Assembly (NCBI GenBank): GCA_002104905.1
Contig: MCFE01000021.1
Span: 1-64,000 of the forward strand
Reading direction: 5' to 3'
From: Basidiobolus meristosporus CBS 931.73
Lineage: Eukaryota > Fungi > Basidiobolomycota
DNA: 64,000 nucleotides
Position 1 is the stretch's first letter. Every line of letters begins with the position of its first letter. Made by a program: the position numbers and the translations under genes. The notes beneath the pieces were generated by a model. The model was not told where the DNA came from and did not search any database. It was given only the letters and a program-made list of their open reading frames with translations. This document shows positions 2,446 through 62,938 of the stretch, in pieces.

Positions 2446-5429
<2,984 letters not shown>

Positions 5430-39221: not shown

Positions 39222-42200
39222 TCAAAAGATTGGTCTTGTTGGACATACGGTTTTAATAACGCTACTGCATATAGTATACGTGACTGAATGGGTCCCGGTT
39301 GTTGATACGGATGAACCATGGCTCTCAGAGGTGCCAGATACGCTTGAGGACCCCGAGTTACTGAATGTTTCAGATGTCTCTGAAGAAGGCTCTGTGCTGC
39401 TCAGAGACTCAGAAGACGGTTCCGTTGTGTTGGATGGCTCTATTGTGGTTGTGCTACTGGTGTTGGATATCTCTGATGTAGGCTCAGTGCTGCTCGGAGA
39501 CTCAGAAGACGGTTCTGTGGTGTTGGAAGGCTCTGTTGTGGTTATGCTACTGGTGTTGGATGTCTCTGAGGTAGGCTCAGTGTTGCTCGGAGACTCAGAT
39601 GAAGGTCCTGTGGTGTTGGGTGGCTCTGTTGTGGTTGCGTTACTTGTGTTGGATGTCTCTGATGTAGGCTCAGTGCTGCTTGGAGACTCAGAAGACGGTT
39701 CCGTTGTGTTGGAAGGCTCTGTTGTGGTCGTGTTACTTGTGTTAGATGTCTCTGATGTAGGCTCAGTGCTGCTCGGAGACTCAGAAGACGGTTCTGTGGT
39801 GTTGGAAGGCTCTGTTGTGGTTGTGCTACTGGTGTTGGATGTCTCTGATGTAGGCTCAGTGCTGCTTGGAGACTCAGAAGACGGTTCCGTTGTGTTGGAA
39901 GGCTCTGTTGTGGTTGTGCTACTGGTGTTGGATATCTCTGATGTAGGCTCAGTGCTGCTTGGAGACTCAGAAGACGGTTCCGTTGTGTTGGATGGCTCTG
40001 TTGTGGCTGTGCTACTGGTGTTGGATGTCTCTGATGTAGGCCCAGTGCTGCTTGGAGACTCAGAAGACGGTTCCGTTGTGTTGGATGGCTCTGTTGTGGC
40101 TGTGCTACTGGTGTTGGATGTCTCTGATGTAGGCCCAGTGCTGCTTGGAGACTCAGAAGACGGTTCCGTTGTGTTGGATGGCTCTGTCGTGGTTGTGTTA
40201 CTTGTGTTGGATGTCTCTGATGTAGGCCCAGTGCTGCTTGGAGACTCAGAAGACGGTTCCGTTGTGTTGGAAGGCTCTGTTGTGGTTGTGCTACTGGTGT
40301 TGGATATCTCTGATGTAGGCTCAGTGCTGCTCGGAGACTCAGAAGACGGTTCTGTGGTGTTGGAAGGCTCTGTTGTGGTTGTGTTACTTGGGTTGGATGT
40401 CTCTGATGTAGGCTCAGTGCTGCTTGGAGACTCAGAAGACGGTTCTGTGGTGTTGGATGGCTCTGTTGTGGTTGTGCTACTTGTGTTGGATGTCTCTGAT
40501 GTAGGCTCAGTGCTGCTTGGAGGCTGAGAAGACGGTTCTGTGGTGTTAGATGGCTCTGTCGTGGTTGTGTTACTTGTGCTGGATGTCTCTGATGTAGGCT
40601 CAGTGCTGCTTGGAGACTCAGAAGACGGTTCTGTGGTGTTGGAAGGCTCTGTCGTGGTTGTGTTACTTGTGTTGGATGTCTCTGATGTAGGCCCAGTGCT
40701 GCTTGGAGACTCAGAAGACGGTTCCGTTGTGTTGGATGGCTCTGTTGTGGTTGTGCTACTGGTGTTGGATGTCTCTGATGTAGGCTCAGTGCTGCTTGGA
40801 GACTCAGAAGACGGTTCTGTGGTGTTGGGTGGCTCTGTTGTGGTTGCGTTACTTGTGTTGGATGTCTCTGATGTAGGCTCAGTGCTGCTTGGAGGCTGAG
40901 AAGACGGTTCTGTGGTGTTGGAAGGCTCTGTCGTGGTTGTGTTACTTGTGTTGGATGTCTCTGATGTAGGCCCAGTGCTGCTTGGAGACTCAGAAGACGG
41001 TTCCGTTGTGTTGGATGGCTCTGTTGTGGCTGTGCTACTGGTGTTGTATGTCTCTGATGTAGGCTCAGTGCTGCTTGGAGACTCAGAAGACGGTTCCGTT
41101 GTGTTGGATGGCTCTGTTGTGGTTGTGCTACTGGTGTTGGATGTCTCTGAGGTAGGCTCAGTGCTGCTTGGAGACTCAGAAGACGGTTCTGTGGTGTTGG
41201 ATGGCTCTGTTGTGGTTGTGCTACTTGTGTTGGATGTCTCTGATGTAGGCTCAGTGCTGCTTGGAGGCTGAGAAGACGGTTCTGTGGTGTTGGAAGGCTC
41301 TGTCGTGGTTGTGTTACTTGTGTTGGATGTCTCTGATGTAGGCCCAGTGCTGCTTGGAGACTCAGAAGACGGTTCCGTTGTGTTGGATGGCTCTGTTGTG
41401 GCTGTGCTACTGGTGTTGGATGTCTCTGATGTAGGCTCAGTGCTGCTTGGAGACTCAGAAGACGGTTCCGTTGTGTTGGATGTCTCTGTTGTGGTTGTGT
41501 TACTGGTGTTGGATGTCTCTGAGGTAGGCTCAGTGCTGCTAGGAGACTCAGATGAAGGTTCTGTGGTGTTGGATGGCTCTGTTGTGGTTGTGCTACTGGT
41601 GTTGGATGTCTCTGATGTAGGCTCAGCGCTGCTTGGAGTTTCAGAAGTCTCGGTTGTAGTTGTACTGCCAGTACTCGATGTCTCTGATGGTGGTTCCGGG
41701 CTAGTTGACGGCTCAGGTGTGGACTCGGTAGATGTGGTTATCGAGCTCATGGTGGTTGTAGGAGATGGTTGACATATAGCGATAGTTCCCTGTTGTTGAC
41801 ACCGTTCACCAGAAGCGCAAGGAGTATAACTCCACGTTGAAGCAAATGCACAATCTAAATGTCCTGAACTATAGCAAACTTGCCCCTGAATGCAACTTCC
41901 TCCTGGTGTCGGGTGCAAAGGATCGATCTCAGACCCATCTGTACTTACGAGCGATGATGTTCCTTTGTCTGTAGATGTACAAAATACTTTGAAAGAGGTT
42001 TCTGTGTCATAATAGCAAGTGCCTCCGTCTCCGCAAGTGCCGAATTGCCACCCCCCTTCTCCACAGCCCAGGAATCCTCCAGTCCCGTAGCAGACATAAT
42101 CATCCAGATTGCAAGGGCCTCCGGTAGTAACTAACGTTGTAATACTTGTACCCTCGGGATTATCAGTAAAAGGATAAGTTACACTACGAGTGGGTATATA

Positions 42201-49226: not shown

Positions 49227-49953
49227 TTGGTTGGTTACATCGCTGGCAAGTAGTAGTCTAAGCAGATATCTGCAGCAAAGAGTAAATGTTCTCTTCAAAA
49301 TATCCAAAAATGCTCTATTGGCTATAGCATACAATTCGGAATTCAAAATCATATAACACTAGGACATAGATCTTTGAATATCAATAACTCTACACAGAAT
49401 CTGCCATAGCATTGATGATGGTATCTGGAATGCAGGACCCTAATGCGTTTGACCTCAATAATTGGTGAATACTCCTGAAGATTCCTTCATGAAGATTCCA
49501 CGTTAGCAACAACAGCACCAAGAGTATACCATGATTGGCCAATAAGTTCTTCTATCGAAGCCAAAACATGAACGGAATTATTTCTGGTTGGATCATAATA
49601 ACATTTTGAGCTTACAAATATTGCTAGATTGGCTTGAAACGAAGGCAAGTTTGATATTTATGGGCCGATTGCCCGGAAACCCCATTGGGATTGGTAAATA
49701 TCAGCAACTTGGCTTAGGTATTGATTGGTAGATATGCCCTCCTCAGTATGCCAATTCCACATATGGACTCGCTACTGAATATGCTAGCATGTTAGCCACT
49801 GCTACTAGGCTGTCAAGATTGGTTTGACGTATGATAACGTAGACCATTATTTGTCATCAGATGCCTTCCAAAAGATCAGTGCGTTTTGCAAATATATAAA
49901 TAATAAGGTATGCTACCAGCAATGTCTTGTCTTATTCAGTGGTATTATTAGAT

Positions 49954-51987
49954 ATGTTCGAAATTGACAACCTTTCCACAAACACTATTCGTGTCCTCGC
50001 TGCTGACACTGTCAAGAAGTCTAACTCTGGCCATCCTGGTGCCCCCATGGGTTGTGCAGCAATGTCTCACGTTCTCTTCTCCAAATTCATGAAGTTCAAC
50101 CCAGAAAACCCAAAGTGGGTATCTCGTGATCGCTTTGTTCTATCTAATGGTCATGCTTGCGCCTTGCAATACGTTTTGCTTCATCTCTGTGGCTATGACG
50201 TTTCCATGGATGACCTCAAGTCGTTCCGTCAAATGAACTCCAAATGTCCCGGACATCCCGAAAACTTCATGACTGCGGGTATCGAGGTTACTACTGGCCC
50301 ATTGGGCCAAGGTATTTCTAACGCAGTTGGTCTTGCCATGGCTGAAGCCAACTTTGCTGCTACCTTCAACAAGGAAGCTTTCCCGGTTATTGACAACTAC
50401 ACATACGCCATCCTTGGTGATGGTTGTTTGCAGGAGGGTGTCTCTGCTGAAGCTGCTTCTTTGGCTGGTCATCTTAAATTAGGAAAACTGATTGCTTTGT
50501 ATGATGACAATAAGATTCAAATCGATGGTTCTACCGATTTGTCTTTCACCGAAGATGTATGCAAGCGCTTCGAGGCATATGGCTGGCAAACTCTTACAGT
50601 CGAAAATGGTGATTCGGATTTCCAAGCCATTGCTGACGCCATTGCTGAAGCCAAGAAGGTAACCGACAAGCCAACCTTGATTAAGATCCGCACTACCATC
50701 GGTTATGGATCACTTTTGCAAGGAAGTGAGAAGGTTCACGGAGCTCCTTTGAGTAACGATGATTTGGCTCAACTTAAGACAAAGTTCGGATTTGATCCCG
50801 CTCAGAGCTTCGCCGTTCCTGAGGAGGTTAGAAACTACTACAAGAACGTCAAGGAGCAAGGTGCACGCCTCGAGGCCGATTGGAACGTGATGTTCGAGCA
50901 ATATGCTGCCCAATACCCTGAACTTGCTGCTGAGCTTAAGCGTCGTATTTCCAACGTCCTTCCCAGTGGATGGGAGAACGCTCTCCCCAGATATACTCCT
51001 GAAGATCCTGCTGTGGCTACCCGTAAGCTTTCTGAGATCGCCTTGAACAAGATTGCTGAGGCCGTCCCAGAACTGGTTGGTGGCTCTGCTGATCTTACTC
51101 ATTCCAACTTGACCAGATGGAAGTCGGCTGTTGATTTCCAACACGAGAGCACTGGACTTGGAAGCTATGCTGGTCGCTATATTCGTTTTGGTGTTCGTGA
51201 GCATGGTATGGCTGCCATTTGCAACGGTATTGCCAGTTATGGAGGTCTTATTCCATTCTGCTCCACTTTCTTGAACTTCATTTCTTACGCACTCGGTGCT
51301 TCCCGTTTGTCATCCCTCTCTCATCTTCGTGTTATCTATGTCATGACTCATGACTCTATTGGTTTGGGTGAAGATGGACCCACCCATCAACCAGTTGAAA
51401 CCTTGACTACTCTTCGCGCTACTCCTAACACCTTGGTCTTCAGACCTGCTGATGGTAATGAGGTGTCTGGTGCCTACTTGGCTGCTATCCAAAACAATCT
51501 CAGACCAAGTGTCCTTGCCCTTTCTCGCCAGAACCTTCCACAGCTTGCTGGCTCCTCGATTGAAAACACACTTAAGGGAGCATATGTGTTGAGTGATGTT
51601 GCCAACCCTGCTATTGTTCTCGTAGCCACTGGTTCCGAAGTTTCTGCTTGTGTGGAGGCTGCTAAGGAACTCGCCAAAAACAACATTCAGGCTCGTGTGG
51701 TCTCGATGCCTTCTATGGAGCTCTTTGATGAACAAGAACAATCCTACAAGGAATCAGTCTTCCCTCGTGGTGTTCCCGTCCTCAGTGTTGAAGCCTTGAG
51801 CACCTTTGGATGGAGCAAATATGCACATGCTTCCATTGGTATGACCACCTTCGGTGCCTCTGCACCAGCAAATCAACTCTATGAGAAGTTCGGTATGACT
51901 CCACCTGCCATTGCAGATAAGGCTATGAAGACCGTTGAGTACTACAAGAGTGAACCACTGCCATATCTTATGGTAAAACCATTCTAA
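49954..51987 (+). CDS. TKL1: Transketolase; start probably ATG 49954, possibly after a 5'UTR intron
   Basis: SGHPGAPMG, DRFVLSNGHAC, TTGPLGQG, TPP-binding LGDGCLQEG..N, FGVREHGM and THDSIGLGEDGPTHQP. Confidence 0.97.
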   Translation: MFEIDNLSTNTIRVLAADTVKKSNSGHPGAPMGCAAMSHVLFSKFMKFNPENPKWVSRDRFVLSNGHACALQYVLLHLCGYDVSMDDLKSFRQMNSKCPGHPENFMTAGIEVTTGPLGQGISNAVGLAMAEANFAATFNKEAFPVIDNYTYAILGDGCLQEGVSAEAASLAGHLKLGKLIALYDDNKIQIDGSTDLSFTEDVCKRFEAYGWQTLTVENGDSDFQAIADAIAEAKKVTDKPTLIKIRTTIGYGSLLQGSEKVHGAPLSNDDLAQLKTKFGFDPAQSFAVPEEVRNYYKNVKEQGARLEADWNVMFEQYAAQYPELAAELKRRISNVLPSGWENALPRYTPEDPAVATRKLSEIALNKIAEAVPELVGGSADLTHSNLTRWKSAVDFQHESTGLGSYAGRYIRFGVREHGMAAICNGIASYGGLIPFCSTFLNFISYALGASRLSSLSHLRVIYVMTHDSIGLGEDGPTHQPVETLTTLRATPNTLVFRPADGNEVSGAYLAAIQNNLRPSVLALSRQNLPQLAGSSIENTLKGAYVLSDVANPAIVLVATGSEVSACVEAAKELAKNNIQARVVSMPSMELFDEQEQSYKESVFPRGVPVLSVEALSTFGWSKYAHASIGMTTFGASAPANQLYEKFGMTPPAIADKAMKTVEYYKSEPLPYLMVKPF

Positions 51988-53207: not shown

Positions 53208-56200
53208 ATGAAAGTAGAAAAACATTCTGAACAATCAACTACGAATCCTAATTATTCCCCTATTCGCCCTACTGTGAATACCACCTTTCGCGCTGTTCCA
53301 ACGAACCCTAGCTTTGACTCTGTAAATATACATTTTTCAGCAGTAATGAGGTTATCAACCCTAACAGTTTGTATTTAGTCAGTGACAGGTTTCACTAGAG
53401 AAAGTATTGGCAGTCTGCAAAGCGATACTTGCGATTTCGAAGGAAGGTATACCAACCGTTTCAGCGAGACAGACACTATACGTTTAATCGATCATATGGA
53501 TGTTGAGGAAATTTCCCTCTCTGACAACATCGATTCTGGAAAGCATTCAAAAACATCACACACCCCATCCCGTTTATACTCCGTGGGCAAGGCTTTTCGT
53601 AGAGCCTCTACCCGTGTTATTGAGCTATCTACCACTTGTTTTGACAATCCAATACCTTCGCACGGCAACTCGGACCAAAAGCATGATCACAATAGCTTAG
53701 ACGATGTACCTATTCCGCAACAACATCGTCTCGGAGGTCGTTCCCTCTTCCTATTCGGGCCCAACAACCCGACAAGAATATATCTTGCAAGGTTGTTCAA
53801 CAGAAGGTAATTGCGATATTGATAGTAATGGAGCTTGGTATTTTCATTTACTAACTGCATGCACTTTCTAGATGGATGGGATATTTGATTACTCTATTAA
53901 TTGTCCTTAACTGGCTCCTACTCTGTGTCCAATACTGGGAACCTGGTGCTCGAGACTTCACTTTCGGCTTCAGTTGGACTGATTATCCGTTGTTAGTCAT
54001 ATTTATACTTTATACGTAAGCATCTTCTCAGCGAACACAATGCAATGACGTCCAAATCGTTAACGGCTTTTATGTAGCTTTGAAACGATTGCAAGAATCA
54101 TTGTGTCTGGGTTCATCATCAACCCACCCACGTCTCAACAGAGACAACCAAGAGTTGAAATTGGAAAAAAATCACCGTTTCTCGTAGTAGAGGTTCACTC
54201 TGAGATCGACTCGCTTTTCCCAGATAGGGCATACTTGCGACATAGTTTCCAGCGGATTGATTTTGTTGTCGTTGTGTCTTTCTGGGTCAACATGATATTG
54301 ATGCTGACTGGATACGGCCGGTTCACTGTGTTTAGTGCTTTGAGCGCACTTCGACCATTCAGACTTATATCGATGACCTCGGGATCTTGGGTATAAATTG
54401 ACAATGCCTAAACCAGCCGATATTCGGACTAACTTATTTTCCTTTGAAGACGATCTTAAGATCTCTCAAAAAGAGTGCGCCAGTCCTGGTTAATGTTTCG
54501 CTCTTCTTGCTATGCTTTTTCTTACTGTTTGGGTAATTAATTATGTTAGACGTTTTACCTTTACGCAAATGCTCACTGACATTGTATGTATACCAGTATC
54601 ATCGGCGTTATCTCATTCGAAGGGTCATTTGATCGACGATGCGTTTCTCAAGGTTGGTGTTCATTAACCATATGATATGCACTTCAATCCCATTAATATC
54701 ATCTCAATAGATTATCAGGAAAGCGACTATGCAAATTTAGAATCTTTTGTTACTGTTCCAGAGCGATACTGTGGACACTACAATGAAACCTCTAAAGGTT
54801 ATAGATGCCCGGCGAATTTTAACTGTGTAATGTGTTTCGTTATTTTCTTTGTAGGATATCCCAGCCATTTAACAGCATACTCTATAGGTGAATGTCGGTA
54901 ACCCTTTTGAAGGAACCCTCGGGTATGACAACATCTTTCAGACAGTTCCAATTTTATTTGGTATCACAGCTGGTATGTTAATGGCAACGCACTGGTTAGG
55001 AAGAGCTTGAGTGACAACACTAACCACCTCTTCAGCCCAAGGTTGGCTTAGCCTGATGTTTCAAACTATGGATGCGGAATACCCATTACCATCCGCCTTA
55101 TATTATATTATCGGAGTTGTTGTATTTAATTTTTGGCTGCTAAATCTATTCGTCGCGGTGATAACAGAAATGTTTGCCAAGATTCGCGAAGATACCAACC
55201 ACAGTGCTTTCACCTCCAGGTATGATAACCATTCTAGTGGATTCTGATTAATACTTATTTATCACGTTGTCCTACAGAGACAAGGCAGCAATTGTTCTGA
55301 ATGACGGTAATGATGAGTTAGATGAGCAGGGGAAGAAAAAGATTCCATCGAAACCAAACTTCTTGCAAAGAAATTTCGATGCTACCTATTATTTTTGGAT
55401 CTTGCTGGTTGCTGCTGATCTGGTTATCATGTGTGTTCGCTCGTATGATCCAGACGATGAAGATAATGTCTTGACACCCGACCCGACCATGAGTACGACT
55501 TTTCTTACCAACTCACTCATACATAACACTCTCCTCGATCATATGAAATAATTCGCAATTTCTATTAGTCCAGGGCGATTTCTTAACTGCCGAGCGTGTT
55601 TTTACATCATTATTCGCACTCGAGATCATCCTTCGTTACTTTGCCATTTTGAAGCCTGGACGGAGGTCTAAATTCTTTCACTCAAAGAGGAACAGACTGG
55701 ACTTGTTTTTGGCAGTTGTCACTTGCTTAATTCAGATCCCCCCTATACCTACAGTTACTTCTGGAATGGTATATCGGTATCTCACAGTATTCCAGGTAGC
55801 AAGATTCTACCGAGTTGTTATGGCAGTGCCTCGTCTTCGTAGATTAATTGTTCGTACATTTCGTATTCACTGAATTGCTTGAAGTATACTAACCATTCAC
55901 ATTTTTACAGACTCGTACTGTCGGAAACGTTATCGGTATGATGAACTTGTTCCTTTTCATTTTGATGTGCATTGGTGTCAGTGCAACTATGGTAGGTGGG
56001 CTGCATTCCATGACAAGATTACTCGTATTGAACAGGCCAATTATGTGTTAGGCGATGCAATTGTTTGGTGGCCAAATAGGATCCGAAGACGGCTTGGACA
56101 TGAATTTTGATAATTTCGCATCTAGCTTCCTGGCATTGTTTCAGGTACATTTGGAGTTAAGAGCTAGTTCACCAGCTAGATATTGATTTTCTTTGTTGGA

Positions 56201-59200
56201 TGTAGGTATTCTCGGGTGATAACTGGACCGATTTGCTGTACGGCTTAACCGGAAGCCAGCGTAAGCACAACATGGCGGTCTTTTCCTCAGTTTTTATTTT
56301 GTTGTTTTTCTGCTTTTCAAACTGTGAGGCATTTTCGTGTCGAATCTCGTTATCTACCTACAATTATTCATGCGTTCCTTTTTAGTCATCCTACTTAACA
56401 TGCTCGTTGCTGTGATCGTGGAGAATTTTGAAATGGACGAAGAAGAAAAACGCAAACTTCAGCTTGAGGAGACCATCAAAGGAATTGAAACTCGGCAAAA
56501 AGAAGGTCAGGCCGTTATCAGGTAAATTCAATGATTCGCAAGTCACGGCTGTAGAAGCATACTCAGGTCGCTTTTGATACAGTAAATGGAACCCATATCG
56601 ATTCTTAAAGCCCAGCCCGAAGGCCTTGGAGGTTGACAGTATTCCATCGAACCTTGTTCTACCCGTTCAGAAGCGGGCTGCTCGCGAATTTCTGCAAGAA
56701 TCAACCTCGAAAGTAGGTGCTCTTAAGCTGCGAAAGTGAAGATTTTTCGAAGCTAACCCGTAATTTTTCAGTCTATTGGAGCCCAACTCAACAGATCCAA
56801 ATCAAAGGGATTTACTTCCCGGGTTCGAAGGTTCCTGAAAATGGACTACGACGATGTAGAACTCGGGAATACAGTTCAAAGGGCTGAAACGAGGGACGAC
56901 AGATTTATAGATGAAGCAGCCGGCAGTAAAGGCCCCAGCATGGAGCAGCACAGCGAGCGCGAGGCAATTCTTAACGACTTCATGACCGCCCATCCAACTT
57001 ACGATACATCGTTGTTTATATTCAAGCGGAATCACCCTATTAGAAAGATCTGCAAGAAGTTAGTGGGAAATTCAGATCCCTCGATCGAGGGAGTGTCGTT
57101 ATCGCATTTCAAACTAAGCCACGCGTTTAACGGGTTCATTTTCGTGTGTGTTGTTGTGAGTGTCGTATTTGCTGCGATCAACACTCCATTGGCTCAACGA
57201 CAACGAATAATCGAAAAGTACGGAAGCCTAGACAATTATACTAGTAAACGCGAGGTGGACATCTTCTACATGATCGACATCATCGTCACTGCAGTGTTTA
57301 CCATCGAGTTTCTCATCCGTATCATTGCCGATGGATTTATGTTTACACCCGAGGCTTATTGGCGGAGTATATGGAATCGTGTGGATTTCTTGGTTTTGAT
57401 CACCCTGTATATTACCTTGGCAATCAACCCCCGGGATGCTACCGGAATTCCGAGAACACTGAGAGCGGCCAAGGGCTTCAGAGCATTAAGAATTGCTAGC
57501 TATTTCTCCGCAGTTCGAGAGGTGTTCTACGGCACCTTGTACTCAGGTTTCCCTCGAATCGTTGATGCAGCGCTACTTTCCCTTTGCTTCATCCTCCCAT
57601 TCTCGATCTACGGGCTAAATATCTTTGCTGGACTGATGTACAGCTGTAACGATGACAATGGAATTTCTAGCCGGGCCGCCTGCTCAGGTTTTTACCCCGA
57701 CAAGGATAATGGATTCTTGAAACCGCGCGTTTGGTCGAACCCGGATAACTTCAACTTCGACAACTTCAGATCGTCGCTTTTGGTTTTGTTTGAGATTGTA
57801 TCCAACGAAGGCTGGGTCGATGTAATGTTGACCACGATGAAAGTCAAGGGGTACAATCTTCAGCCCGAAGACAAAAATGCCTGGTATAATGCCATCTTTT
57901 TCATGATCTACAACATGGTTGGGGCAGTTTTCGTGTTGACCCTTTTTGTGGCGGTTATCATCGAGAACTTCAACACCCGTAATGGAACTGCATTCCTGAC
58001 CGCTGAGCAACGAAGATGGATTGATATGAAAAATCAGCTGAAGCAAATCAAACCATCTATTCGACCAGTGACTCCACCTGTCGACAGAGTTCGGAGGTGG
58101 TGTTACGAAATGGCTATCGAAAAGAATGGGTTTCTATCTAAATTTGTGATCGGGGTGACCATATTTGACGCCTTGCTTTTGGTAACGCAATATCATACTC
58201 AACCAGATGTCGTCGATACCGTTAAAGGTACGAATTGGTAAGCGTCATCTATAGAAGTCACCGGTATTAACATTGCCCTGTAGACATTCTCTTTGGATTA
58301 ATCTTTCTGTGTTATATGTTTGAGATCGTTGTGAAGTGCCTTGGACTTGGTGTTAGAACGGTATGGTGTGCACCATTAATGTCACATCAATGGACGAAGT
58401 GTTGATCTTCTACTTTGTAGGTACTAATGAATCCATGGAATGTGTTCGATATTGTCATTACCTTCGGTCTTGCTATCTCGTCCATTTCGCAGTTGGTAGA
58501 GAAGTTTGTGTTAGGTATAGCAAACGGATCTCGTCTGTCGTTGAGAATCTTCGTTACACTGGTGTTGTTTAAAGTAGTCCAGAAAATCGATAGTTTGCAT
58601 CAGCTCCTGAGAACAATGGCGTAAGTGGATTATTATTGTGAATGCAAAGCACCGGAGTAACCGATTTTTCGTCATTGCAGTGTCAGTTTGAGAACCATTG
58701 TTAATTTACTGGCCGTTTGGTTCTTGGTTTTTGTGATTTATGCCATCGCCTTCATGGAGATTTTTAGTTTGACAAAGATGGGCGAGAATGGAGGGGCTCG
58801 AGCAAATTTCCGGAACTTCTCCAACTCCATATTGAATCTATTGGGAATGTCCACCGGTGAAGGCTGGAACGATTTTATGCATGACTTTGTAACCCAAAGC
58901 CCTGAATGCGTAGCCAGCGACAGCTATTACTTGCAAACAGATTGTGGAAGTCCCGCTTGGGCCTATTTCTTATTCATCTCCTTCAACATCATCTCGATGT
59001 ACATCTTTGCCAACCTGTTCGTCGTCGTGGTCATGGATGGATTCTCATACTGCTATCAAATCGCGTCCTCATATTCTCTGATGAAGAGAGACGATATTAG
59101 AAAATATCCTTTGAGTTTTGCTCACAACCTATTGCTTTAGAATTGCCAATGTATATATCCTTAACAGGTGCTCACTTTCAAGAAGGCATGGGGCGAAGTA

Positions 59201-60456
59201 GATATTCATGGTAATGGTTATATATATCAGAAAGATATAGTCAAGCTATTCTCGGTAAGGGTATTTGCGAATTTGGTCTTCATTCGACCCTACTAATGCA
59301 TTGTCTAGAAACTGTCTGCACCATTTGATGTCAAGATATACCCCGATCAGTATTCTATACCAACATTACTTCGCGAATGTCGTGCTCCAGAGAATCTCGA
59401 CGTAGCCCCATCATTTTCATTTAGAAAAAGTTCGAAGAGAAACATTTATGAGCTTACTGATCAACGGCCAGAGGCAAAGCTTCCGGATTTCAACATATTG
59501 AACACTCGATTATCGGATTTGAATTCGACCGAGATACATGAAAGGAGAAGGATTTATAACTTGATATATCAGGTTAGGTGGCCAGTAGTGGGAGGCGGGA
59601 AATCCTTGACTAACATTGCCGCTACATTATGTATATAGGAAGCCATGGATCTAGGTGCAAATAATCGAAAGATTAGCTTTACTAAGATGTTGTTGCTCCT
59701 GTCCATCTACAAGCTCACTGATCCAGTGAAAAGTTTTCTGTATGATTTATTTTCCACCCACTTGCGTAATATGCTGCATGGTATTAATGAGTGTTTTTCA
59801 TTTAGTCCTACCGATTATATCAAGCGCAAAGAACGGATGGACCAAATTGTGGACAAGGTTCGCATGGATACACTTAGGGGCTTTTTGCTTATTGCGATCC
59901 AGAGAAAACGAATCCGTGAAATTCGAGCACAAAGCGATAGGCACGCAGAGTTCGAGCACCCCCAAACACCCGAAACACAAAGTAAACTGCATTCCGCTTG
60001 GATTTGCTGTGATGAATCTTCCTAACCCCTTCCTCAACTTAGATGCCCCTGATGCAATCGGGCCTGAGATTAGAATAGTTTCTGAAAGCTCCACAACAAG
60101 GCATCATCCAACCTCCACCTATACCCCAGAGAGACCAGCAGTACACGATATTTTCCCGCATTCCTCCGCATCGCCGTAAGTCTACTTCAGTAATCATAAT
60201 GCTAGGAAAACCCTAACCCGATTCTTCAAGTGGATATGTCGATGAAAGCGATGACAACTGTAGCGTTAGTAGCTTGAAAGACATGGATATTAGTCAAGCT
60301 GATGATATCCTGACCGACTTCAGAAGCAACCAATGGCATGGTAATGTAGTGTTTCTCTACCGCACTCGTTAAGCAAGTATTAACTCCAATTTAGATGCTC
60401 TGGTTGCGGAGACGCATGATCTTTACGAGAGCAGCACATCTGAAGAAGACGACTGA
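53208..60456 (+). CDS. CCH1: Four-domain voltage-gated-type Ca2+ channel Cch1 (NALCN/Cch1 clade); many introns, one of them AT-AC
   Basis: Four S1-S6 repeats with S4 motifs (LSALRPFRL; VFQVARFYRV; LRAAKGFRALR; RLSLRIF) and pore helices TAAQGW, FSGDNW, VSNEGW and STGEGW. EF-hand-like segment FKKAWGEVDIHGNGYI follows IVS6. Confidence 0.93.
59104..59175 (+). other. U12-type (minor) AT-AC intron, 72 nt, in CCH1
   Basis: 5' splice site ATATCCTTT at 59104, branch point TCCTTAAC at 59158-59165 and terminal AC at 59174-59175. Removal joins AA|T to give DDIRNFKKAWGEVD; retention hits in-frame TAG at 59138-59140. Confidence 0.95.
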
Positions 60457-60856: not shown

Positions 60857-62533
60857 TCACGTATCTCGGGCACCACTTTCGTAAACGGCCTTGACTGTGG
60901 GGAATCTTAACGAGATGCTAGAGGGTGTTGAGGCCTTCCTGTTTACCGAGGGCTCTGTCTCCGAGTAGTATTGTACCGTGATCGGTTTTCCAATAATCAA
61001 AGAGGGAGTAGCTGCGTATCTAATTCGCTGATCCAGCGTAAACCCAGATCCAACATTAACCTTATTGCCTTTGTATCGAATGACGACTGATCCTAGTATC
61101 TCTCGCTCTTCGCTAGTTCCACGAACTGCCAGATTCATCTTTGTCTTCTGAATATCCTCAACAATGAACTCTTCGTCTTCCCACTGTTTGATTTTTAAGA
61201 GGTTTCGGCTTCGCTTCCCTTCGTATTCAGTATCGTTTCTTAGCATAAGACCCTCCCAACGTCTCTCAAAGGCGACGTTCTTCAGCTGCTGCAAGTGTGT
61301 AAAATCCTTGACTTTGGTGTGCTCAAGCAACTTCATTCTGGGATGGTCAAAATCGTTGAAGAGTTGATTCGCAAAGTCAAGACGCTCAGAAAAAAGTCTA
61401 CTTCTTTCCTTCATTAGGAACTCCTTATGTGTTAAAACGTCAAACACGAAATATACAGGGTCTTGAACTTGGTGCTCATTGCGAGAGATTTCTCGCATGA
61501 TAGCTTGGAAATTCTCTACATTCCCCTCAAGGTTGCGGCTATCTTTGAAGACACATATCTCCCCGTCAAATACCAAACCACCATGAAGAGTTTTCACCAG
61601 ATCCATGCGTGTGGAGGTGGATAGCAGTAACTTAGTGGCATCCATTATCTTCGATAAAGAGAAAAATTCATTCCCTCTTCTGGAAAAACATCTAATCTTT
61701 AGATCAGTCGGTGCTGAGTCGGTATCCAGGGATACGAACGTCAAACACCGGACTCCGTCCAGTTTTCTAGACGCATAAAATTTTCCCTTGGATCCGTGAA
61801 ATAAAGCCTCTTCTTCCGAAGGGTATAACGTCTCCGCCAATGCGGTCTTGAAATTCGAGATGCTTCCAGGCATCGCACGATTCAGCAAAGCGACGCCTAC
61901 ACCAGTTCCAAGCTTGCGATCTAATATATCGTATACGACATCGTGGTAGGTCTCCGAGCAACATCTATTAAGAAAACTCAGGATTGCGCCAATCGCGTTC
62001 AAACCGGTGAGTTCTCGAGAAGTAAGCCCCTTCAATAATTGCAGTAGCGTTCGTGGAGGTTGCTGAAAGGTTCTAGTTTTGGCCGGCAATTCATCCTCCT
62101 CCATCAATTCACGCACCCGTTTTGAGTGTAGGCCAAAAGTCAGCTTAGGGTCGGAAACAAAAGTCAAGATTGGGAATAGATGACGACTTGATTCCAAAAT
62201 TTTTATCTTCTCCGTGGTCGATTGAGTACTCTTGAGACGAGTCTGGAGTTCAAGCAACTGCGCTAAATCAACATCATTCGATTTTAAAACCTCTGAGAAT
62301 TCCGAGGTCTTATAAATGCGAGGATTTACTTCGCACTTTCTCCGAGTGGAAAATCCTCTGTGGGCCAAAATAGTAGCATTGTGGTTATCCCTAAGAGTGA
62401 AAGGACGAGTAGCTAAAAGAGGACAACCCGAGGGCCTCGGTAGCTTAGGTTTACTGATCTCAGTACTGAGAGTTGGGGTGTATCTGAAAAGCTTATCCAA
62501 CTGATGTACCAAGGAAGTTATCCGAGTTTTCAT
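60857..62533 (-). CDS. Compact phage/virus-type ATP-dependent DNA ligase with a putative mitochondrial presequence, intronless
   Basis: Motif I RKLDGVRC, III VFDGEI, IIIa YFVFDVL, IV WEGLMLR, V LLKIK, OB-fold VGSGFT and LRFP. No BRCT or zinc finger. The N-terminal ~65 aa are Arg/Ser/Leu-rich and nearly acid-free, ending RGFSTRR. Confidence 0.88.
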   Translation of the reverse strand: MKTRITSLVHQLDKLFRYTPTLSTEISKPKLPRPSGCPLLATRPFTLRDNHNATILAHRGFSTRRKCEVNPRIYKTSEFSEVLKSNDVDLAQLLELQTRLKSTQSTTEKIKILESSRHLFPILTFVSDPKLTFGLHSKRVRELMEEDELPAKTRTFQQPPRTLLQLLKGLTSRELTGLNAIGAILSFLNRCCSETYHDVVYDILDRKLGTGVGVALLNRAMPGSISNFKTALAETLYPSEEEALFHGSKGKFYASRKLDGVRCLTFVSLDTDSAPTDLKIRCFSRRGNEFFSLSKIMDATKLLLSTSTRMDLVKTLHGGLVFDGEICVFKDSRNLEGNVENFQAIMREISRNEHQVQDPVYFVFDVLTHKEFLMKERSRLFSERLDFANQLFNDFDHPRMKLLEHTKVKDFTHLQQLKNVAFERRWEGLMLRNDTEYEGKRSRNLLKIKQWEDEEFIVEDIQKTKMNLAVRGTSEEREILGSVVIRYKGNKVNVGSGFTLDQRIRYAATPSLIIGKPITVQYYSETEPSVNRKASTPSSISLRFPTVKAVYESGARDT

Positions 62534-62938
62534 AGTGGTGGAAACTCCTTTTGACAAACCTTCAAATGACCAATTTTGCCAGTTTTGCCATCAAACAAAA
62601 ATGATTTAAAAAATTTGAATTAACCTTGATTACCGGAGGGCTGTCCATTGAGTGTATGATGCGGGTGGTTGACCAACGGGTTCTAGAATCGGATACCAAA
62701 TTAAATGATTCGCTTAGACGCTCTACATACGTTATTCCACCTGGAATATATAGAAGGGGTCAGTAGAAATGTTGTTTTTCAGGTGTATTCTGGATTACCG
62801 ATCTAGCCTTATTCACAAAAACATTTACAAAAAGAGCTTTAAATGGGAATTCTAGATTTAACTTGACATTGGTCATATGGTCAACACAGCTATAAAACTA
62901 GATAGAGGTCGCCCGGATATCTGGTGTAATAAGTGAGT

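Follow-up and report, generated by a model that had tools for sequence, protein, structure and literature searches.

The window analyzed here, a 64,000-nucleotide (nt) stretch of contig MCFE01000021.1 from the fungus Basidiobolus meristosporus CBS 931.73, contains the gene for the calcium channel Cch1 (K493DRAFT_333364, CCH1, 1907 amino acids). Just after the sequence encoding segment S6 of domain IV (IVS6), this gene is interrupted by a 72-nt AT-AC intron of phase 2 (positions 59104–59175, forward strand). With a probability of roughly 0.9, this is a genuine U12-type intron of CCH1, which is old, has been repeatedly lost and has no dedicated regulatory role. The observations behind this reading are the splice signals, the reading frame, exact agreement with the public protein and conservation of the position in seven loci, including the window. 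An earlier note, made from the sequence of the window, had described an AT-AC intron of Cch1 with a canonical donor, branch point and AC end; all of these features were confirmed, and the same intron was found in each of the seven loci.

The 5′ splice site of a U12-type intron is expected to read /RTATCCTTT directly at the exon boundary. Indeed, the intron opens with ATATCCTTT (59104–59112), which is invariant in six aligned loci and is also present in Dichotomocladium. The branch site is expected to follow TCCTTRAC, with the branch A approximately 8–21 nt (optimum, 10–15 nt) from the 3′ splice site, and a polypyrimidine tract is not needed. In the window, TCCTTAAC is located at 59158–59165; ten bases follow the motif, which places its branch A (59164) at a distance of 11 nt from the intron's 3′ end. 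The AC terminus (59174–59175) is invariant in the alignment. The frames on both sides (58682–59103 and from 59177 onward) are congruent to 2 modulo 3, and an Asn codon is split as AA/T. The AG dinucleotide to which the earlier note had drawn attention (59166–59167) is present directly 3′ of the branch motif; an intron ending there would be 64 nt long and out of frame. This AG would be too near the branch A to function as a 3′ splice site of a U12-type intron. By itself, the donor 9-mer carries no significance (one match versus 1.44 expected per window), and a loose composite scan for donor and branch site was equalled by most shuffled sequences, so that motif counts were dropped as evidence. 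The weight of the case thus rests on position and conservation.

The identity of the gene was established from the exons flanking the intron. A HMMER search was performed with an exon as the query against 1.84 billion representative proteins, and a word-indexed search with the best match as its query provided names. The matches of the exon in the HMMER search are Cch1-type channels, and the UniRef name of the K493DRAFT_333364 protein (P0151) is "Calcium-channel protein CCH1". The two flanking exons share 100% and 99% identity with this protein, the sole mismatch being an alternative-start artefact at residue 1. When the public protein was threaded through the window by a script, all 1907 residues were reproduced by 26 coding exons and 25 introns on the forward strand (53208–60456, with the stop codon at 60454–60456). 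Twenty-four of these introns are GT-AG introns of 54–76 nt with fungal CTAAC-like branch sites; the intron at 59104–59175 is the only AT-AC intron and the only one without GT-AG termini. Ion_trans Pfam matches are found on the CCH1 exons, and the length of the protein together with multiple internal matches points to four repeats. The closest solved structures are those of NALCN and Cav1.2, NALCN being the closest animal channel. These similarities place the gene in the Cch1/NALCN clade of four-domain cation channels.

Exon 20 (58681–59103) encodes S5, the pore loop and S6 of domain IV and the first residues after S6, ending with ...SLMKRDDIR and the AA of the Asn1578 codon. It corresponds to the C-terminal half of an Ion_trans repeat (Pfam E-value of 7.8e-21), and the list of open reading frames (ORFs) shows its frame as open between 58688 and 59103. 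Exon 21 (59176–59254) supplies the T of the Asn1578 codon and, in the frame starting at 59177, encodes FKKAWGEVDIHGNGYIYQKDIVKLFS; it is closed by a GTAAGG donor. This exon forms the start of the EF-hand/GPHH-like region that follows IVS6, for which the GPHH Pfam match is weak (E-value of 0.0016, below the cut-off). The exon domains and the public protein thus bear out the placement of the intron in the earlier note, just after IVS6 and at the start of this region.

The spliced product is well conserved across the junction. The public annotation of K493DRAFT_333364 already uses the AT-AC junction (R1577-N1578-F1579), and in the threading only the 59104/59175 boundary pair was compatible with the public protein. 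The orthologue from B. ranarum (P0001) reads DDIRNFKKAW at the same place. With the public protein as the query, Cav1.2 aligns without a gap through the junction to Cch1 (...MDGFSYCYQIASSYSLMKRDDIRNFKKAWGEVDIHGNGYIYQKDIVKLF...), exon 21 itself is aligned to Cav1.2 without a gap, and the spliced product is also free of gaps against NALCN, whose equivalent codon is the H of ...LR/H/FQIIW. The motif [IL]R-x-[FY]K-xx-W at the junction is common to approximately 130 Cch1 proteins. Removal of the intron therefore restores both the frame and a conserved protein sequence.

Short ORF fragments from further organisms provided a lead to the distribution of the intron. These fragments run from IVS6 into ...IR(K/G/E)YPF, which is the translation of NN/ATATCCTTT. 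The DNA of the loci was retrieved and the site was located in each. In seven loci, the window included, an AT-AC intron interrupts the same codon in the same phase. Besides the window, these are the B. meristosporus paralogue K493DRAFT_366141 on MCFE01000103.1 (L008:5779–5849, 71 nt, branch site TCCTTGAC), Dichotomocladium elegans (L014:6315–6389, 75 nt), Diversispora epigaea (L011:8288–8391, 104 nt), two contigs closest to Mucorales, namely L001 (76 nt) and the JGI metagenome contig L004 (L004:3225–3323, 99 nt), and contig L007, closest to Glomeromycotina (82 nt). All seven introns begin with ATATCCTTT and end with AC, and all contain a TCCTTRAC-type branch motif, which in Dichotomocladium takes the one-mismatch form TCACTTAAC instead of TCCTTAAC. 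Across the six loci for which it was measured, the distance between the branch A and the 3′ end is 11–22 nt (11 nt in the window, and 11, 11, 18, 22 and 22 nt in the others, L004 being one of those with 22 nt); in Dichotomocladium, 11 nt separate the branch motif from the 3′ end. Otherwise, the length (71–104 nt) and the interior sequence are unrelated among the loci. No intron is present at the site in Rhizopus delemar (L012), Calcarisporiella thermophila (L013), Neoconidiobolus thromboides (L009), Entomophthora muscae (L015) or Syncephalis fuscata (L010), and a Mortierella-like genomic fragment (P0129) likewise reads straight through it.

The simplest reading of this distribution is that a single old minor intron, predating the divergence of Basidiobolus, Mucorales and Glomeromycotina, was probably inherited vertically and lost precisely and repeatedly. 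As such, it offers a clean positional marker for the study of minor-intron loss, being common to Basidiobolus, Mucorales and Glomeromycotina; among the fungi that have lost it are Rhizopus delemar, Calcarisporiella, Entomophthorales, Syncephalis and Mortierella-like fungi. In the proposed mechanism, ATATCCTTT would be recognized by the U11 and U6atac small nuclear RNAs (snRNAs), TCCTTAAC would base-pair with U12, and the cut would fall at the AC, 11 nt 3′ of the branch A. AA/T would be joined into Asn1578, linking IVS6 to the EF-hand-like C-terminal region. A full-length channel requires removal of the intron. The intron probably goes back at least to the common ancestor of Basidiobolus, Mucorales and Glomeromycotina, with independent losses in several lineages. 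We infer that the minor spliceosome is used in vivo and that the intron has no special regulatory role.

Several points weigh against this interpretation. Gains might in principle have contributed to the patchy distribution, although it is implausible that independent gains would agree in codon, phase and termini. The junction is known here from the sequence and public gene models; a search for transcript-derived fragments, with the exon alone as the query, yielded three fragments, all of which are genomic and none spliced. An Rfam scan of the window revealed no minor snRNA gene, so that the evidence for the machinery itself comes from published work.

The density of minor introns reported for B. 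meristosporus is the highest known in fungi, with 249 minor introns and a share of 0.554% (Larue & Roy 2023, PMC10639083). The CCH1 intron resembles the catalogued U12-type introns of this species in its donor (ATATCCTTT), branch site (TCCTTAAC), 11-nt spacing, AT-AC termini, occurrence as a single minor intron among many U2-type introns and non-zero phase. It does not differ from them in kind; what is added is the conservation of its position in Cch1 of Mucorales and Glomeromycotina, its loss elsewhere and the mis-spliced models described below. The intron as such is ordinary, i.e., a canonical U12-type intron in the fungus richest in them, already included in the public coding sequence. Its conservation across phyla and the mis-annotations are small additions to knowledge rather than a new kind of observation. 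A literature search found no published mention of a minor intron in Cch1.

Retention of the intron would have a clear effect on the reading frame. As the earlier note had proposed, it would lead to a premature stop, the in-frame TAG at 59138–59140. The retained reading continues as ...DDIR KYPLSFAHNLLL before the stop, adding twelve residues (KYPLSFAHNLLL) and ending approximately 330 residues short of the C-terminal end. As there are five further introns downstream, nonsense-mediated decay would be a more probable fate of such a transcript than translation. A stop upon retention is found in six of the seven loci; the 99-nt intron of L004 is open and would insert 33 residues.

These effects bear on the possibility that the intron acts as a regulatory gate, in which slow or stress-sensitive minor splicing limits Cch1 output and retained transcripts are degraded or yield a channel without its tail. 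The premature stop in six of the seven loci is in line with this possibility, as is the survival of the intron in several lineages from which many other minor introns have disappeared. The principle also exists in animals: in rat cardiomyocytes, knock-down of U6atac leads to retention of minor introns in Scn5a and Cacna1c and to lower currents (PMC8767276). By analogy, the fungal intron shares with this U6atac-dependent control of Nav1.5 and Cav1.2 the predicted premature stop upon retention, and lower output of functional channel would be expected. However, in fungi, one orthologous intron, that of L004, is in frame and free of stops, so that truncation upon retention appears not to be conserved throughout, and five lineages without the intron still keep the gene. 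Moreover, a gene with 25 introns has an approximately 13% chance of containing at least one minor intron at a density of 0.554% (our arithmetic on PMC10639083), and no special explanation is needed for its presence. The pan-eukaryotic survey also favors mostly neutral processes in the evolution of minor introns (PMC10639083). A regulatory gate therefore appears unlikely. A related proposal, which we regard as slightly less likely still, takes the intron to be ancient within the Cch1/NALCN lineage, to predate the split between Mucoromycota and Basidiobolus, and to have been kept by selection because slow minor splicing throttles channel expression. If this were true, fungi and animals would both couple the output of four-domain channels to the minor spliceosome, via different introns. 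The presence of the intron is most likely explained by slow, roughly neutral retention in a genome rich in minor introns rather than by a dedicated regulatory device.

Minor introns are well known in the related animal channels. Every Nav and Cav α-subunit gene of animals has at least one (PMC6865273), and Cch1 belongs to the same superfamily, which would allow the fungal intron to be the counterpart of the animal AT-AC introns, derived from one minor intron ancestral to all four-domain channels. Yet, the conserved Nav/Cav AT-AC intron occupies domain I S1 and is missing from NALCN (Fux et al. 2018, PMC6259924), the minor introns of rat Cacna1c are introns 2 and 13 of 44, and that tested in Scn5a is intron 3 (PMC8767276), whereas the fungal intron follows domain IV S6. 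The human and mouse tables of minor-intron genes that were searched (Olthof et al. 2019) include CACNA1C but not NALCN, and a literature search found no published work linking NALCN with a minor intron. A single ancestral intron is very improbable, and it is already contradicted for the known U12-type positions in animals. Collectively, the introns of fungal Cch1 and of the animal Nav/Cav genes share the intron class, the consensus motifs and the four-domain channel superfamily, but the fungal site follows residue 1577, after domain IV S6, while the animal sites are in domain I S1 and at other N-terminal positions. Compared through positions given in the literature, the fungal intron and the domain I S1 intron do not coincide. 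The parallel with animal channels drawn in the earlier note hence holds for the class and the superfamily but not for positional homology, and the link is one of analogy only. Minor introns are thus found in four-domain channel genes of fungi as in those of animals, at another site, which speaks against simple descent from one channel intron.

Intron 2 of CCH1 (53807–53871) sits near the site of the conserved animal Nav/Cav U12-type AT-AC intron. It is of the U2 type (GTAATT...TACTAAC...TAG) and of phase 2, and is located directly 5′ of domain I S1 (…LFNRR/WMGYLITLLIVLNW). If the two sites were to coincide, this could point to a conversion from U12 to U2 type.

The enumeration of all plausible dinucleotide pairs near the post-IVS6 junction showed that GT 59115 with AG 59198 or 59201, and GC 59120 with AG 59182, also give in-frame, stop-free products. 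The statement in the earlier note that the frame is restored by no GT donor nearby therefore does not hold in the strict sense. Bridging of the gap by the major spliceosome, through a U2-type AT-AC intron or through one of these in-frame pairs, with the U12-like motifs being coincidental, is nevertheless the least credible of the alternatives: such GT-AG/GC-AG pairs are chosen by gene predictors in the paralogue and several orthologues, but all of them delete or disrupt the IRxFKxxW motif conserved in approximately 130 Cch1 proteins, Cav and NALCN, which only 59104/59175 restores; ATATCCTTT is invariant in the seven loci and is followed by a TCCTTRAC-type branch site 11–22 nt from the AC, though the intron interiors diverge; and the mis-modelled proteins carry a translated intron (RKYPF...) that is seen in no correctly spliced or intron-less homologue.

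The errors in public gene models at this site are of several forms. The public protein of the paralogue K493DRAFT_366141 (P0152) is mis-spliced and reads DDIRKYPFSVTGSMSTTISHSWSEVD; in this model, 48 nt of the intron are translated (RKYPFSVTGSMSTTISHS), and an implausible 35-nt GT-AG "intron" is then removed. The conserved RDEIRxFK residues are skipped in the models of Diversispora epigaea (P0166), D. eburnea (P0005), Geosiphon pyriformis (P0013) and Ambispora gerdemannii (P0155), and that of Apophysomyces ossiformis (P0008) reads RKYPFIC. The faults in the orthologue models are consistent with the same unrecognized AT-AC intron; among these orthologues, the DNA was checked for D. epigaea. The correct AT-AC junction is used in the public models of B. 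meristosporus CCH1, B. ranarum and Dichotomocladium (P0151, P0001 and P0164). The expectation that predictors limited to GT-AG introns would mis-model the gene was thus borne out for the paralogue and for Diversispora, Geosiphon, Ambispora and Apophysomyces, but not for the gene in the window, whose public model is correct. As a consequence of the mis-spliced models, the EF-hand-like region is corrupted in alignments and structure models of the affected proteins.

Elsewhere in the window, one other U12-type candidate was considered, an RTATCCT site at 3336 with CCTTGAC 420 nt downstream; it was rejected because of its poor donor (ATATCCTCC) and the lack of supporting context. A tandem array at 39373–41647 consists of 24.5 copies of a 93-bp unit (31 codons) with 92% identity; it coincides with a strong anomaly in GC and AT skew at 40–42 kb and is probably a repeat-rich coding region. 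Directly upstream of CCH1, an uninterrupted 686-codon ORF on the forward strand (49927–51987) encodes a complete transketolase (Transketolase_N with an E-value of 1.5e-153, together with the pyrimidine-binding and C-terminal domains). On the other side, a 566-codon ORF on the reverse strand (60857–62557) converges on the 3′ end of CCH1.

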